From positions 6,820,001-6,884,000 of the forward strand of contig CP075494.1 in NCBI GenBank assembly GCA_021613535.1: 64,000 nt of DNA. The letters run 5' to 3'. This document shows, piece by piece, positions 1 through 7,630 of the stretch. How positions within the stretch are numbered: the stretch's first letter is position 1; each line of letters begins with the position of its first letter. This DNA is from Adineta vaga. Lineage: Eukaryota; Animalia; Rotifera. Below the pieces are notes generated by a model that was not told the origin of the DNA, ran no database searches, and saw only the letters and a list, made by a program, of their open reading frames with translations. The position numbers were made by a program, and so were the translations under genes.

Positions 1-2654
1 TTGTCAAATGAAATTACAAAAATTCCCACTGGATAACCAAACATGTGTAGTTAATATTGGCAGTTGTATGTATCTGATATCGATGATATATATATAACCA
101 CGAAAACATTCTTTGTTTATTTCCAGATGGTTTCGCTACAAATGATTTGGCATTCTTTTGGGATGAAGCTCAAAATGTCAGTGCTATCCGAGTTAATGAA
201 GATCTTGAAATGCCTGATTTTGTCTTAAGTAATCACGAAGCAAGATACTGTAATCGAACAACAGCAACAGGTTTGATTCTATTTCATTGTTTGTAAATTC
301 GATTTACAAAGAAAAAAACTTTCTTCATTTGAGTACACTTTTAATTATATGCTGCAATCTTATATACATATATATGTATTTTCTTTTGTAATAAGTTTTC
401 TTTTCTCCTCGACTGACTCGTAGGAAAATTTGCTTGTATCGAAGTACATCTCGCTTTACAACGCAACATCAATTTATATTTACAACAGCTTTATTTACCA
501 TCAACATTAATTGTTGCTCTATCATTTATCGCATTTTGGATCGACTATAAATCTCATCCTGCACGAACATTATTGAGTCTACTCAGCATTGTTACTGTAA
601 CAACAAAGGCTGAAGGTACAAGAAAAACTTCTCTTTCTTATTGTTTTTTTATCTCTCTCTCTCTCTCATTCTCTTTACTCTAACCTTTATCTTGAGTAAA
701 AAAAGCTCATACACACACGCGCGCGCGCATATTCTGCTTGCACTATCCGTTTGTTTGTTTGTTCGTTGGTTGATTGATTTTTTTTTCTTTTGAGAATCAC
801 CACACGAAAGTTCCATGCACTTTTTAAAAAAATTTGACTAATATTTCATATGAGTTAGCAGCAAAGTATACACAAATGAAGAAAGTTTTTCAATTATATT
901 CGTTTATTTATTTAAACGATCGATATTCTAGGCAGTTTTACATGCCTTCTTGTTGTTCTTCATTTGAAACGTTTATTTGGTTATTATCTTGGTGAGTTTA
1001 GTAAATATGAATTATTTTCTTTTTTTAATATTATATGAGAATGCATCTGAGAAAGTTAAATTTCTATAGTTCAAGTTTATATTCCATCAATGCTTATTGT
1101 GATTCTTTCTTTTGTTTCATTTTGGATCGATCATAAGTCGGTAAGGTCGCCACTAAAGTCGAATAGCACACTTGTATTTCTAATCACTATATTCAGGTTC
1201 CAGCTAGAATATCAGTCGGTCTTTTAACTGTACTTACAGTTACTACTCAAAGCTCAGGTAACTAAATTAATCATTAAAAAAAACCATACAAGTGAATACT
1301 CATCATAATAATAAATCATTTCCATCCATATACACTTATTCACACCATGCTCACTGCTTCCTTTCTTCTTCTGTTCATCGAATGCTTTATTGCTTATTTT
1401 CATAGGGTCTTAGTCAGGAAGACATTTTTCAACTTTTTTTTATAAATATTAAAACATCTTTCTGGCTAACGACCTTGCTTAATGCTTTCACCCTTATCCA
1501 AAACTAAAATGAATATCAATTCGATTCGATTCTAATAGAAGTTTTTTAATCGTTATTTAGGTATACGATCACAATTGCCGCGTGTATCATATATAAAAGC
1601 CATTGATGTTTGGATGTCAGCATGTCTTGTTTTTGTTTTTGCTGGTCTACTTGAATATGCACTTGTTAATGTTATTGCTCGAAAAGGCGAATTAAGACAA
1701 CAAGTTCGTTTTTCAAAAGAAGTAAGTTTAAATATATTTGTATTTTGTTATATTATTGTTATCTCTTTAATGAAGTCTCGTTATATGAATGATAATCTAT
1801 TAATATATATTCATCTGTCTATTTCGACAATATATTGTAGAAAAAAAATCCAGACAGACCACCCAAAGTAACTCTGATACAAAAACTACAGAATGGCTCA
1901 TCTTTTGCTGCTGAGAGAGTAAATCAATTATATTTTTATTTTCATACGTAGTAGTTAATAGAATCTTTTCCCTAAAGCTTCTTCTTATATTTTTCTCACA
2001 TATACACATACACATTTATTTATATATATATATATATATATGTATATATAGTTTTCACAATATTATCATTATAATTATTCTTATTATACATTGATATTAG
2101 ATGATCTTAGTTGTTTTTCTTTTTTTGAAATTATTTTCTCTATCAATATTCCTCTTCAAGGTTATTGGCAATCGTCTTGCTCAAGTGCATTTCTATAAAA
2201 AAGATGATGCACATCAAAGTAGTGCTGAAACGATGGAAACACTTGTTCATAAAACAAGTGGTGCTGAGAGAAACTTAGGTGGAACTACCACTACTTCACA
2301 TGCTCATTATTCTTCAATGTCAAATGCTAATGCACCTTCACCAACACCACAGATTGTCTTGTCACAACCAGCACAATTAGCAAAAGCTGCTAAACCTGTT
2401 CGTGACAGTGCACAATTTGTAAGTGAAATTTAATCATCCAAAATCTTATGTGTTTTTTTTCTTTCTCTTTCTTCTCTAATTAAGGTGGATCTTATTTCAG
2501 CAGTTCTTTTTCCTGTTGCCTTTATTGTATTTAATATTATTTACTGGTAAGAATTTACTTTTGTTTTGTTCTCTATCAACACAATATTTTGCATCTGTCA
2601 TTAATGTTTAGGATGGTTTATCTCAATATGCATGTTGAATATGTTTTGAAATAA
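1..2654 (+). CDS. Cys-loop ligand-gated chloride channel subunit (GluCl/GlyR-like), 5'-truncated by the window edge. Exons <1-65, 127-270, [424-615 OR 932-991+1070-1140+1197-1257], 1561-1721, (1841-1867/1918), 2161-2418, 2485-2546, 2612-2654
   Basis: Cys-loop [15 protein letters not shown]; second loop-C cysteine pair ([10 protein letters not shown]); anion-selective PAR motif before M2; M3 [22 protein letters not shown]; M4 [20 protein letters not shown]; GT-AG junctions in consistent phase. Confidence 0.93.
424..615 (+). other. Alternative pore exon A (beta10-M1-M2), 192 nt, phase 1-1
   Basis: AG at 422-423, GT at 616-617; translates [64 protein letters not shown](G) without stops. Confidence 0.85.
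711..728. repeat. (AC)n(GC)n alternating purine-pyrimidine tract, preceded by (CT)n at ~653-667
   Basis: acacacacgcgcgcgcgc seen directly in the intron between the two pore modules. Confidence 0.8.
932..1257 (+). other. Alternative pore cassette B (three exons 932-991, 1070-1140, 1197-1257; 192 nt total)
   Basis: Translates [20 protein letters not shown]|[24 protein letters not shown]|[20 protein letters not shown](G); canonical donors gtgagt, gtaagg, gtaact. Confidence 0.9.
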
Positions 2655-3288
2655 TCAATAATGACATTTAATCAATAAAACAAAACATTGAAAGTTTTCT
2701 TTTTCTTTTTGTTTAAATCTATCAACGAATGCCATACAATGATGTTGTTTCGTTTTCCCTTTTTCTTTCGTTTTCTTTTTTTTTTTTGAATGTAATGATC
2801 ATCATCGAACAGTGTATGTCTTATTTTTTAATGTGATACATGATGGATGTATTAATGAATATCTCGACAAATAATTCTTATGTATCGAATAAACATTTTC
2901 CTTTTTTTCAATATTCTTGAATGAATGAAAATATAATTGATTTCGACAAACTATTCTCTATAATTGAATGCATAGAATGTTCACATTTTCACGAAGAGAA
3001 AAAACGTCCAACTTTATTTATAATTCTTAATTTTAATTATACGCGTGTTTATCCTTGCAGCTTTAATGTAATCAAGCATTCTTCATTCTTTTTTTCTTAT
3101 ATTTTAATGATAGCATGTCTTACAAAATGAAAACATTTACGTCGTCTTATTTCCGTTCATTTCATCATAGTATAACTGACACACTTTGAAATATCTAAAT
3201 GCTTCCTTTTTTTCTGTAGAATTTTTCTTCACAATGAAAAAAATATGTAATGACACAAAATAAAATGAAATGCTTTGCTTAGTTTCAT

Positions 3289-5152: not shown

Positions 5153-7630
5153 AGATCAGTGAGAATGGTAGAGATAATATTGTCCCATTGCGCTAGGTCA
5201 AAGAATAGTGTAACTTACGTAAAAGATTCGCGTTTCCACTTAATGCCATGTTGTATCAAATCACGTTCCTAGAAAATAACAAAAAGAAGAAATGATATAC
5301 AAAAATCTTCTTCTGATTTTGATATTATCAGGAGAATAGATGTAAACACTTTCTTCTTATCATACATAAAGGTAGACAACAATTCATTTACATAATAAAT
5401 TAGTGGTATTCAAATGATCCTAAATTATCTAAAATAAAAAAGATCAATAATTCCTCCTGGGTTTTTAAAATTTCATAAATAAATGCGATAAATATCAAAG
5501 AAATGATAAACGAATGATACTCATTCATCGAATATATAATCGATTGAATAAAACAGAATCTTAGGAGATTGATCTTAACGGTTACATTTATATAAAACTA
5601 TCAATCTTATCTTATAAAATCATTATAACATTGTTTATGTCATATTCATCTTCTCACATGATGTTATCAACATCTAATCGTCTAAATCAAACTGCTAATC
5701 GTATCTTATTAGACACTATTTATTTATTATTTCTCTCCCAGCGAACATAAATAAACGGTAACTAAATGTTTATTTTCTCTTTCATGCTCAACTTACATCG
5801 ATTTTCCAAATGAAAATGATTTGCTTCCGTATTCTTTTTTTTTCTCACAAAATCATAAACTTTTAATTTCCCTGAGCGAAACAGAAACAAAACAAGTAAA
5901 TACAATATCAATTCTCCTAAGTCATATCATTATTAGTTTTTTTCTTCTTCTATACATCGTTATCGTGATATCAGATAATCGAATACTTACGAATATGGTT
6001 AGATAAAATTCGATTAAGAATATTAATACATTGATTAGATTTCTTACATGGAAAAATATTTCGCATCTCGTTAGAGATTTGTTAACGCTATTTCAATGAT
6101 AATTAGCTGTTTACAACAGAAGTCGTTCGTACGGTTTTCTTTCTGAAAAGAAAAACAATGAGAGATGCAGAGGGAAATATTTCTACAGTAGATCTTCTAA
6201 TGTAACAAGCGGAGTTTTCATTAAGACTTCGACAACAAATATTCCTATGACAGTAAGATGACGGTAGATAATGACAGTAGGAAAACAAATCTTATTTCGA
6301 GATTCTTAATGCTATGCTCTTAATAGTATATCTGGTATTGTTTTTTGTTCTATATTTATTTACATAGAAGAATAAATAGACGTCGATGGATATTATGACA
6401 TTCCTGACACGTTAGAGATATCTCATCTAATGAAATTTCTTTTTCATCTCAAATAAATCTTCTTTGATCTTCAAAATCAAAACTGTGATTTTCTTTTTTC
6501 GAAAAAGGATTTACTTCATATCGATCAAGGTTATATGAAAGGAGTCTCTTGTTAATATACATCGTTTAAAGTGGAAAATATTGTGTTGTTTTCATTTTAT
6601 TATTTCTCGAAGGAAATTGCACTATTTACTATCTTCTACAGATTTATGAATAAATCGACGAAATTAATCTATGTTTTGCCAGACAAAACATTCTTTCTTA
6701 GTTGGGAATATGACCTTTAGAGATATGAAAACAATACATATTTGGTTTCATGAACAGGTCAATGTAGATTGCTGTACTTTACAATCATTAAATTTCATTA
6801 TGTATAGTAAATGCTCACCTGCTATTTCGAATTAATTAAGAAAGAAATAAAATCATAGATACTGTATACATCGATATTGATCGAATGGTTTCAAAAATAC
6901 TTGTACACTGAATTAGCCTTGGATCTGACATTGCACATAATTAAATAGATATTTACTCAAACGAATCATTTTTCAATTTCTCATTTGTCAGATGTGTCAC
7001 GTTTATGAACATGAAAAGAAATTATCTTCCTATTTACAGATCGTGCTATCGTCAAAACTGTATTAACCAAGTTTAGTTTGATCATCGAAATCATATCATA
7101 TAATACGATTGAATATCTCTGACTAAATGCTTGTACTATCGCTATACATTCTGTAAAGACGAGAGGTCGCTGATTGACAGTGCTGTATTTTTCTTTGTTT
7201 ATTCCTATGGTACATCTAAGCAACTAACCGTTTGTTCGTTCTATCGTCTTTATAAAAATGACTCATGAAATGTTTCTCTCGAGTTTAGCGAAAGCTGATC
7301 ATTGATCAAACAATGATAAATACAGAAAATATACTTTTATAAATCGAACGAATTCCAACATGAATTGTATTTCTACAATCAAACTAAATGTTTTTCACCA
7401 GATTACTCGGCGCAATTGAAAAAAATAAGAACAAATCACAAATTACGCATGACTGAATTATGCAGAACAAGTTAAACTTTTAATCGAATGTTCACGTTTA
7501 TGAATGCGATACCGTTTGAAATTAAATAGAACGTTTTATATTACGTAAACATACTATTGACGAATACTAATATCGAAGATTGTTATTATGCATTTCGTTG
7601 GTTTTTTTTAATTTTCTCTTGAAGATATCA

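Follow-up and report, generated by a model that had tools for sequence, protein, structure and literature searches.

Two complete versions of the pore-forming segment of an ion channel subunit lie one after the other at the start of the analysed window (the whole stretch of 64,000 nucleotides), which raises the question of whether one gene makes two pores and, if so, what keeps the two versions apart. The locus is one gene, beginning ~650 nt upstream of the window start, and encodes a GlyR/GluCl-type anion-selective pentameric ligand-gated channel subunit of an Adineta-type bdelloid rotifer. Its A. steineri ortholog P0153, in which module B and both shared exons match this gene with identical residues, contains the domains Neur_chan_LBD (PF02931, 1e-44) and Neur_chan_memb (PF02932, 7e-36) and has GlyR alpha (1e-101), GluCl alpha (2e-89) and GABA-A beta (1e-80) as its closest relatives in PDB. 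Exon A by itself scores 31.8 bits against Neur_chan_memb, for which the Pfam cut-off is 28.1 bits. The Cys-loop (C-x13-C) is found in P0153 and at positions 1-65 of the window. A second disulfide, in loop C (C-x10-C), characterises GlyR and GluCl; here it is present with either module and straddles the borders 270|424 and 270|932; loop C here reads TTATG(K/S)F, the GlyR counterpart being HYNTGKF.

Reading and translating the sequence bears out the description in an earlier note of two complete, stop-free 64-codon versions with phase-1 borders. Module A is a single exon of 192 nt with AG|..|GT borders, 63 full codons and zero stops, and module B reaches the same length over three exons (60+71+61 nt), each bordered by AG|..|GT, with outer borders in phase 1 as in A. 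The two align without gaps but are diverged, as had been claimed: they share 33 of 62 comparable residues and are 58% identical in nucleotides. The expected second loop-C cysteine, M1 and M2 are present in both, together with the pre-M1 Arg, the M1 Pro, the FWID motif, M2 up to 16' and, before M2, the PAR motif that is linked to anion selectivity. The A- and B-mRNAs differ solely in 64 codons, from the end of loop C through M2 16'. Among the pore residues, 2' Ser of B is Leu in A and 9' Leu is Val in every lineage (both residues of A deviate from the family consensus), and the C5 clade, to which the present copy belongs, has 14' Lys and 16' Glu in A. From these exchanges we infer that A-type subunits would differ in gating and pore properties, and the A and B products may co-assemble into putative heteromers. 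The features are collected in the table.

Table. Exons of the channel gene and candidate RNA stem arms, in window positions
Feature	Position	Strand	Evidence
Upstream coding exon with the Cys-loop end, truncated at the window start	1..65	+	joint 65>127; match to P0153
Shared exon, loop F to first half of loop C; ends ..YCNRTTAT, phase 1	127..270	+	joined to A and B1 in RNA contigs
Candidate stem arm 1, intron before exon A: 314-341 plus TGCTGC at 351-356; core CTTTCTTCATTTG	314..356	+	
Module A, single 192-nt alternative exon: loop-C end, beta10, pre-M1, M1, M1-M2 loop, M2 to 16'	424..615	+	
Candidate stem arm 2, 41 nt 5' of B1: GCAGCA, core CAAATGAAGAAAG and T-run	857..890	+	
Exon B1 of module B, 60 nt: loop-C end, beta10, pre-M1	932..991	+	
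Exon B2 of module B, 71 nt: M1 and M1-M2 loop	1070..1140	+	
Exon B3 of module B, 61 nt: PAR motif and M2 to 16'	1197..1257	+	
Weak candidate third arm, intron after B3; arm 1-like, could pair with arm 2	1360..1389	+	
Shared exon: M2 17' onward, M2-M3 loop, M3	1561..1721	+	joints in RNA contigs
Independent 78-nt cassette exon, M3-M4 loop, included or skipped	1841..1918	+	joints 1721>1841, 1918>2161, 1721>2161
Shared exon: M3-M4 loop and M4	2161..2546	+	
Last coding exon, stop 2652-2654	2612..2654	+	joint 2546>2612 in four runs

The choice at the 78-nt cassette is mirrored in the A. steineri isoforms P0152 and P0093. Six more independent loci, comprising the ohnologue at 13,001,215-13,004,397 of contig C2 and five other Adineta lineages, have both modules in matching order and with matching lengths, so that the two-module arrangement is not due to chance. 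The earlier note held that co-inclusion would keep the frame, that NMD therefore could not enforce exclusivity, and that an active mechanism would be needed. The frame is indeed preserved by double inclusion and by double skipping alike, and NMD is rejected as the cause of the putative exclusivity; steric hindrance is rejected because the A-B1 intron measures 316 nt, and U12/U2 incompatibility because all splice sites are GT..AG. A candidate answer to the need for an active mechanism is a conserved long-range stem around exon A.

An inverted repeat (314-341 with 863-890) brackets exon A and is the longest one in both ohnologues, at homologous places, with complementarity over 28 nt at 93% in C5 and over 41 nt plus a nested 24 nt in C2. 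Both arms are present in all seven lineages. The 10-nt TTTCTTCATT / AATGAAGAAA is invariant in every one of them and the full 13-nt core in six, the core lying 34-82 nt 3' of the shared 5' splice site and 46-84 nt 5' of B1. The duplex of arm 2 with intron 1 is predicted at -20 to -32 kcal/mol, better than all 300 shuffles in every one of five lineages tested. Predicted pairs number 40-56 in each of the seven lineages, two helices are maintained by differing sequences in the most diverged lineages, and the helix extensions vary from lineage to lineage (e.g. TCACATTTT with AAAATGTGA, or a 20-bp perfect helix in L013). The stem appears in both the MFE and the centroid folds of C5, C2 and L013 (z -3.8 to -4.8). 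Conserved complementary intronic elements are found on either side of the alternative exon, as in RNA-structure-controlled splicing, and a stem looping out exon A is the likely switch between the modules. An origin of the arms as transposon ends is unlikely, since the core is conserved amid introns that have diverged since the genome duplication, and is also countered by the fixed distances between arms and splice sites. In a search of the introns for known RNA families, the only matches were miRNA-like ones at 1398-1482, which at 27 bits fall far below the gathering score of 84.5 and were taken as chance.

Once formed, the stem would loop out exon A, and the 661 nt that separate B1 from the shared 5' splice site would shorten to ~43 + 41 nt; because this is an ordinary intron size in this gene, B would be chosen. 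If the first intron were spliced before arm 2 pairs, A would be the module used, and its 3' end would next be spliced to exon 1561 over the B block. The stem would account for the bypass of A, not for the bypass of the B block once A is used. As a device for the latter, a third arm was considered and set aside as a weak candidate: the energy of its pairing with arm 2 in C5 (E -13.8 to -19.2) falls inside the shuffle range, as does the pairing of arm 2 with the intron after B3 in L017 and L013, and shuffles are exceeded only in L019 (-27.5 to -32.2 kcal/mol, 0/300 shuffles), L002 being marginal. The best duplex between introns 2 and 5 uses the arm-2 segment in four of five lineages, its partner lying in an alignable block. 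A 13-nt pair in C5 (623-635 with 1534-1546), considered as a bridge from the A donor to exon 1561, was dropped since no homologous pairing was found in C2. The distant loci L024, L025 and L026 have an intronic element complementary to the coding stretch for F(F/W)ID(H/Y)K; for an exon-masking element of this type, nothing above shuffles was obtained in the five Adineta lineages probed.

We are fairly confident that the whole explanation consists of two alternatively spliced, selected modules and a conserved bipartite stem reaching from the pre-A to the pre-B1 intron. A more elaborate scheme seems doubtful. It would treat the three-exon B as one choice unit, with a selector before B1 toggling between the pre-A arm and a post-B3 arm, would have the products co-assemble into a mixed-pore chloride channel, and would assign to the distant relatives another RNA device, the intronic element able to mask either exon, the switch having been rebuilt and the choice of pore kept.

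The complementary elements might instead form no stem and be bound by splicing factors, the one before B1 as a purine-rich enhancer and the one before A as a pyrimidine-rich element, exclusivity being set by tissue-specific factors or kinetics. Their cores, a purine motif of GAAGAA type and a pyrimidine motif of CTTTCTTC type, do resemble the elements that proteins typically bind (SR-protein and PTB-type sites); the 10-nt element never varies and thus provides no covariation; and a second stem for the bypass of B is not conserved. We nevertheless regard this reading as unlikely, given that complementarity extends well past the core in both ohnologues, that the pairs predicted in all seven lineages include extensions of differing sequence, and that the stem is recovered by both folding methods in three lineages.

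The preferred reading of two alternative modules is supported by RNA-derived contigs, in which all four junctions named in the earlier note were found. These assembled contigs, from runs of three studies (one a metatranscriptome on record as RNA), demonstrate presence, not absence or proportions, rare forms being dropped. On the A side, 270>424 occurs in run X1 and, with a 134-nt side, in run X7; 615>1561 occurs in X1 and X2 at depths of 12-15, and a contig of X1 spans the whole of exon A with zero mismatches and continues 30 nt into exon 1561. Spliced A transcripts are thereby found in two studies, one of them a wild metatranscriptome. On the B side, 270>932 is present in X1 and X2, with a loose end in X7 (the unitig over this joint is identical in both ohnologues and cannot tell the copies apart), the internal junctions 991>1070 and 1140>1197 are present, and the exit 1257>1561 is spelled by loose ends in X1, X2 and X6. 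A joint 989>1072 with 'CGTA' in between, seen in X1 and X2, was rejected as an odd splice of this gene, being the B1'-B2' junction of the C2 ohnologue.

These joints also bear on the possibility that A is an ordinary optional cassette before a constitutive B, so that the main A product would contain both modules and six membrane helices. The frame would be kept in such a product, and contigs can prove neither its absence nor that of a product skipping both modules, yet neither 615>932 nor 270>1561 is among the best 15 of 18 joints in the RNA contigs, and the depths of 615>1561 in two runs, together with the contig leading from A into exon 1561, establish that some A-containing RNA lacks B, at a level comparable to the B joints. 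Co-inclusion as the rule is accordingly very improbable.

Selection has acted on the two modules to different degrees. A' of the ohnologue is 77% identical to A (local match over residues 2-62; 47/63 by a second comparison), and the B protein does not vary among the lineages and is identical between the C5 and C2 ohnologues; residue differences between the two copies amount to 16 of 63 in A vs 0 in B. Comparison of A with A' gives dN 0.170 and dS 0.818 (ratio 0.21), and B between ohnologues has dN/dS of 0.015. The dN/dS check of exon A proposed in the earlier note indicates purifying selection, with values of 0.06-0.33 in 20 of 21 pairs of lineages (Fisher p down to 7e-12) that are separated by dS up to ~1.4. 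Disrupted or missing copies of exon A, which that note had envisaged as evidence against its proposal, were not encountered: in the ohnologue and the five other lineages, as here, the exon is intact, always 192 nt, AG..GT and stop-free, with no indel and no splice site lost, and includes an invariant stretch of 13 residues, while the introns beside it range from 124 to 391 nt. Purifying selection has kept both modules since before the bdelloid genome duplication, B as the canonical, frozen module and A as a faster-evolving yet constrained one. That exon A is a decaying duplicate (a pseudo-exon) included through splicing noise is hardly credible, for even if it evolves much faster than B, has Val at 9' and Leu at 2' off the family consensus and is used by no annotated A. 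steineri protein of four, its reading frame and splice sites stay whole in seven lineages as neighbouring introns change length freely, its substitutions are constrained, and its spliced transcripts come from two studies. The 90% cluster of P0153 contains four annotated A. steineri proteins, all without A, so that current gene models probably lose half of the output of this gene.

In distant relatives each module is a single exon, and the two introns of B are therefore derived. A tree of 36 modules over 63 columns places A on a long branch within the canonical group; AU tests reject neither a grouping of A with the upstream module of the distant loci (p 0.15) nor one with B-like modules (p 0.37).

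A swap of pore regions by splicing is already known in kind, and the present gene is a further variant with unequal exon numbers. The earlier note placed the alternative exons of Rdl, GluCl and GlyR mostly in the extracellular part or the M3-M4 loop; its list of known cases was incomplete, pore-region swaps being known in nAChR alpha6 (exon 8), unc-49 and avr-14. In insect nAChR alpha6, the mutually exclusive exons 8a/8b/8c change pore-lining TM2 residues (PMC2064938, PMC6393475). As here, a pentameric ligand-gated channel gene has tandem homologous exons in an arrangement conserved across species, used singly there and probably so in the rotifer; in contrast, nAChR alpha6 is a cation channel with one exon per alternative, and residues of TM2 are what its swap is described as changing, whereas the rotifer gene is anionic, its exchanged part begins at the loop-C end and takes in both M1 and M2, and one alternative comprises three exons. 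C. elegans unc-49 (UNC-49A/B/C) and nematode avr-14 (AVR-14A/B) each make several subunits from one gene, and UNC-49B and UNC-49C co-assemble, UNC-49C altering picrotoxin and GABA sensitivity (PMC8841521). These are likewise anion-channel genes with a common ligand-binding N-terminus and different channel domains, and the self-supplied heteromer partner suggested in the earlier note is already realised in unc-49. In those genes, however, several complete C-termini stand in tandem, each with all membrane helices and the protein end, and the N-terminus is joined to one of them, whereas the rotifer gene swaps an internal 64-codon cassette and then returns to shared exons for M3, the loop and M4. 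The alternative exons 3 and 6 of Rdl and exon 3 of GluCl lie in the extracellular domain (PMC2064938); such exons in Rdl, GluCl and GlyR belong to the same branch of the receptor superfamily and share an origin by tandem duplication, but none is described as replacing M1 and M2. With regard to mechanism, docking site/selector splicing of Dscam1, 14-3-3xi, srp and ATE1 (PMC6071210, PMC4691838, bioRxiv 10.1101/2020.06.04.134791) similarly involves complementary conserved intronic elements beside alternative exons; when these elements pair, the exon not in use is looped out and the selected acceptor comes to lie near the constitutive donor. The rotifer gene differs in that one conserved pairing was found (arm 1 with arm 2), a competing second pairing not being conserved, and in that the unit selected by the predicted stem would be a three-exon block.

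The gene provides a natural, selection-tested chimera, whose two products have the extracellular domain, M3, the loop and M4 in common but diverge at the loop-C end and in pre-M1, M1 and M2; among the changes are Leu to Val at the 9' gate and Ser to Leu at the 2' constriction. One can thereby examine directly how gating, conductance and blocker sensitivity in the GlyR/GluCl branch depend on the coupling region and the pore, and ask if self-supplied heteromers like those of unc-49 arose independently outside nematodes. It also presents a splicing choice between alternatives of unequal exon number in a genome of very short introns, where NMD is unable to police the outcome. Because the candidate stem has been kept since before the ancient tetraploidy, the locus would be a compact system for the question of how RNA looping may select a multi-exon block.

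Re-reading and translation of the sequence returned exactly the coordinates and nucleotide counts that the earlier note had proposed for two interchangeable pore modules, with AG and GT at every exon border of both. The modules, described there as alignable without gaps yet diverged, share 33 of 62 residues and 58% of nucleotides. The gene starts ~650 nt upstream of the window (G000 contig C5:6,820,001-6,884,000, in a 100.8 Mb assembly of six contigs). In a protein search, with each exon searched by itself, the closest named proteins come from Adineta steineri, which suggests an Adineta-type bdelloid rotifer as the source. The A. steineri ortholog P0153 (471 aa) contains module B and both shared exons with residues identical to the window, has both the Pfam ligand-binding and membrane domains, and finds its top solved relatives in glycine receptor alpha (1e-101), followed by GluCl alpha (2e-89) and GABA-A beta (1e-80). 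The Cys-loop and the second loop-C disulfide of the GlyR/GluCl type, together with the PAR motif preceding M2 in both A and B, identify the gene by its sequence as an anion-channel subunit of this branch.

Coordinates of the exons and modules in the window and in related loci
Feature	Coordinates	Strand	Remarks
Shared exon	127-270	+	ends after base 1 of a Gly codon
Exon A	424-615	+	192 nt, AG/GT borders
Block B	B1 932-991, B2 1070-1140, B3 1197-1257	+	60+71+61 = 192 nt
Shared exon	1561-1721	+	downstream of block B
Ohnologous gene L002	G000 C2:13,001,215-13,004,397	-	
Distant loci	L024:1-792, L025:500-1760, L026:600-1873		two tandem M1-M2 modules

Assembled contigs from four RNA runs of three studies were placed on positions 1-2700 of the window, with 638-679 skipped as a repeat, and contain all four junctions named in the earlier note as diagnostic of the two forms. 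The 270>424 joint is found in run X1 and also in X7 (a 438-nt contig with 134 nt of the shared exon and 136 nt of A), 615>1561 in X1 and X2, and 270>932 in X1 and X2, with a loose end in X7, and 1257>1561 is spelled from both sides by loose ends in X1, X2 and X6. One X1 contig carries the full exon A with zero mismatches followed by 30 nt of exon 1561. Within block B, 991>1070 is joined in X7 and 1140>1197 in X1, X2 and X7. The unitig spanning 270>932 is the same in both ohnologues. A 615>932 joint does not occur among the best 15 of 18 joints; contigs show neither absence nor proportions. Joint depths in the contigs (5-15 for A and 13-35 for B) are no measure of proportions and tell no more than that both forms exceed trace level. 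The A-containing contigs of run X7, recorded as a plant-associated metatranscriptome, are 3-9% off the window, so that A is spliced in wild relatives as well.

The ohnologue is also transcribed, as X1 and X2 contigs cover its B1'-B2' junction and some of its intron sequence. A 989>1072 joint with CGTA between, seen in X1 and X2, is this junction according to the L002 sequence and does not belong to the window gene; loose ends at 914 and 1727 match L002 too. Separately from the A/B choice, a 78-nt cassette exon in the M3-M4 loop (1841-1918) is both included (1721>1841, 1918>2161) and skipped (1721>2161). A. steineri has an annotated protein of each kind (P0152 versus P0093), and the cassette of its ortholog encodes 26 residues.

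Both modules recur outside the window, as the earlier note had suggested checking: the same layout is present in the C2 ohnologue and in five further lineages from public assemblies and metagenomes (L013, L014/15, L016/17, L018, L019-22). Exon A is 192 nt long, AG..GT-bordered and stop-free in all seven, with adjoining introns of 124-391 nt. The B protein does not differ among lineages, while as many as 16 of the 63 residues of A do, with a 13-residue stretch and the M1 core retained. Comparison of the two ohnologues gives A a dN of 0.170 and a dS of 0.818 (ratio 0.21), compared with ratios of 0.015 for B and 0.05 for the shared exons, and the A ratio is 0.06-0.33 in 20 of the 21 lineage pairs (Fisher p down to 7e-12). 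This purifying selection and the intactness of A in seven lineages mark it as a functional coding exon, judged to be less constrained than B.

By the established M2 numbering, A has Leu at 2' and Val at 9' in every lineage where B has Ser and Leu, and Lys/Glu at 14'/16' in six lineages where B has Gln/Ser (Gln/Ala in A of C2). The modules further differ at the loop C tip (K/S) and over most of beta10/pre-M1; the pre-M1 Arg, the M1 Pro and PAR are common to both. In GlyR, GABA-A, RDL and UNC-49, these positions control gating, conductance and sensitivity to blockers. The A and B products are likely to differ functionally.

Double inclusion and double skipping both preserve the frame, so that NMD cannot enforce the choice, as had been pointed out. 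Steric hindrance is ruled out by the 316-nt A-B1 intron, and mixed spliceosome types by GT..AG at all sites. The longest inverted repeat of window 100-1760 flanks exon A, pairing 314-341 in intron 1 (arm 1) with 863-890 upstream of B1 (arm 2) over 28 nt at 93% complementarity. The homologous repeat, 41 nt long, is also the longest of the ohnologue and is accompanied by a nested second helix (24 nt, 88%). All seven lineages have the same 10-nt stretch of the stem (TTTCTTCATT / AATGAAGAAA), and the complete 13-nt core (CTTTCTTCATTTG / CAAATGAAGAAAG) is found in six, 34-82 nt past the shared donor and 46-84 nt ahead of B1. A second helix follows (TGCTGC / GCAGCA) with lineage-specific extensions. 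In the most diverged lineages pairing is maintained by sequences that have changed: in place of the GAGTACACTTT / AAAGTATACAC of C5, L013 pairs TCACATTTT with AAAATGTGA and forms a perfect helix of 20 bp, and the base pair following TTATATA is G-C for C2 and A-U for L013. The duplex of arm 2 with intron 1 (-20 to -32 kcal/mol) is better than all 300 shuffles in every one of the five lineages compared, and in folds from the shared donor to the B1 acceptor the stem belongs to both the MFE and centroid structures (z of -3.9 for C5, -3.8 for C2, and -4.8 for L013).

We infer a looping switch built by the stem around exon A. The closed stem would hold exon A in a ~520-nt loop and reduce the path from the shared donor to B1 to ~43 + 41 nt, an ordinary intron size in this gene. 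An open or pre-empted stem would leave exon A, as the nearer one, to be used. The model covers the bypass of A; skipping of the B block after A has been used falls outside it. In the intron after B3, L019 carries a near-perfect copy of arm 1 (5871-5897, AACTTTCTTCATTTG) whose duplex with arm 2 has an energy of -27.5 kcal/mol, reached by 0 of 300 shuffles. The competing duplex between arm 2 and such an arm-1-like block is strong in L019 (-27.5 to -32.2 kcal/mol), marginal in C2, and within chance, judged by shuffles, in C5, L017 and L013; the window homologue of the block (1360-1389) is degenerate. A hairpin in the same intron (1398-1482) has sub-threshold matches to miRNA precursor models (best 27.4 versus a gathering score of 84.5 bits), probably by chance. 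The intron after exon A, 212-391 nt long among lineages, contains (CT)n, (CA)n and (GC)n microsatellite runs at 638-740 of the window.

Module B is the canonical one: it reaches 72% identity against flatworm homologues and 60% against vertebrate GlyR alpha, and A no more than ~50% against anything matched outside Adineta. Other paralogues in the same genome match the 64-codon stretch within one open frame. The orthologous gene is also present on three metagenome contigs from more distant organisms (L024, the TARA marine scaffold L025, and L026), with clearly orthologous neighbouring exons. In L024 and L025 both modules consist of one 192-nt exon each; the downstream module has 79% identity with Adineta B, and the upstream module is divergent. 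From these loci, the two-module design is judged to be older than Adineta and the two introns within Adineta B are most simply explained as later gains, making the one-exon versus three-exon asymmetry secondary. In a tree of the 63-residue modules, AU tests rejected neither the grouping of Adineta A with the upstream modules of the distant loci (p 0.15) nor that with B-like modules (p 0.37).

The distant loci have a different element in the intron between the modules, one that complements the stretch encoding F(F/W)ID(H/Y)K. The L024 element (372-394) pairs with a site in either exon, 127-148 and 606-627 (86% and 91% over 22 nt); in L025, 1158-1179 pairs with 810-831, and in L026, 1293-1313 with 1023-1043. 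This element is a possible exon-masking switch; it was not found in the Adineta lineages probed. Another anion-channel gene (P0013, L028:2300-3400) has two tandem diverged M1-M2 exons ~330 nt apart, and the only two inverted repeats of at least 14 nt in this region share the downstream arm 3176-3195, which pairs with 2309-2323 before module 1 and with 2817-2836 before module 2. The layout is docking/selector-like, and its A/T-rich arms may pair by chance. Two diverged M1-M2 segments also occur in single predicted proteins of Hyalella azteca (P0019), Branchiostoma belcheri (P0022/P0034), and Bursaphelenchus and Caenorhabditis bovis (P0014/P0015). The nematode models look like read-through of avr-14-type alternative channel domains, and the amphipod and amphioxus models may represent either fused tandem genes or additional alternative pore exons that annotation has missed.

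Mutually exclusive exons that exchange pore-lining sequence have a precedent in exons 8a/b/c of insect nAChR alpha6 (PMC2064938, PMC6393475), and the production by one gene of subunits with a common binding domain and different channel domains has one in unc-49, whose subunits co-assemble, and similarly in avr-14 (PMC8841521). That mutual exclusion can rest on RNA pairing is well documented, and such pairing tends to arise through tandem duplication (PMC6071210, PMC4691838). Our literature search turned up neither a mutually exclusive M1-M2 cassette described for a GlyR/GluCl-type gene nor a study of rotifer receptors of this type. The new elements are an internal loop-C-to-M2 cassette within the anionic branch, alternatives with unequal exon numbers, the age of the two-module arrangement, and a specific conserved candidate stem.
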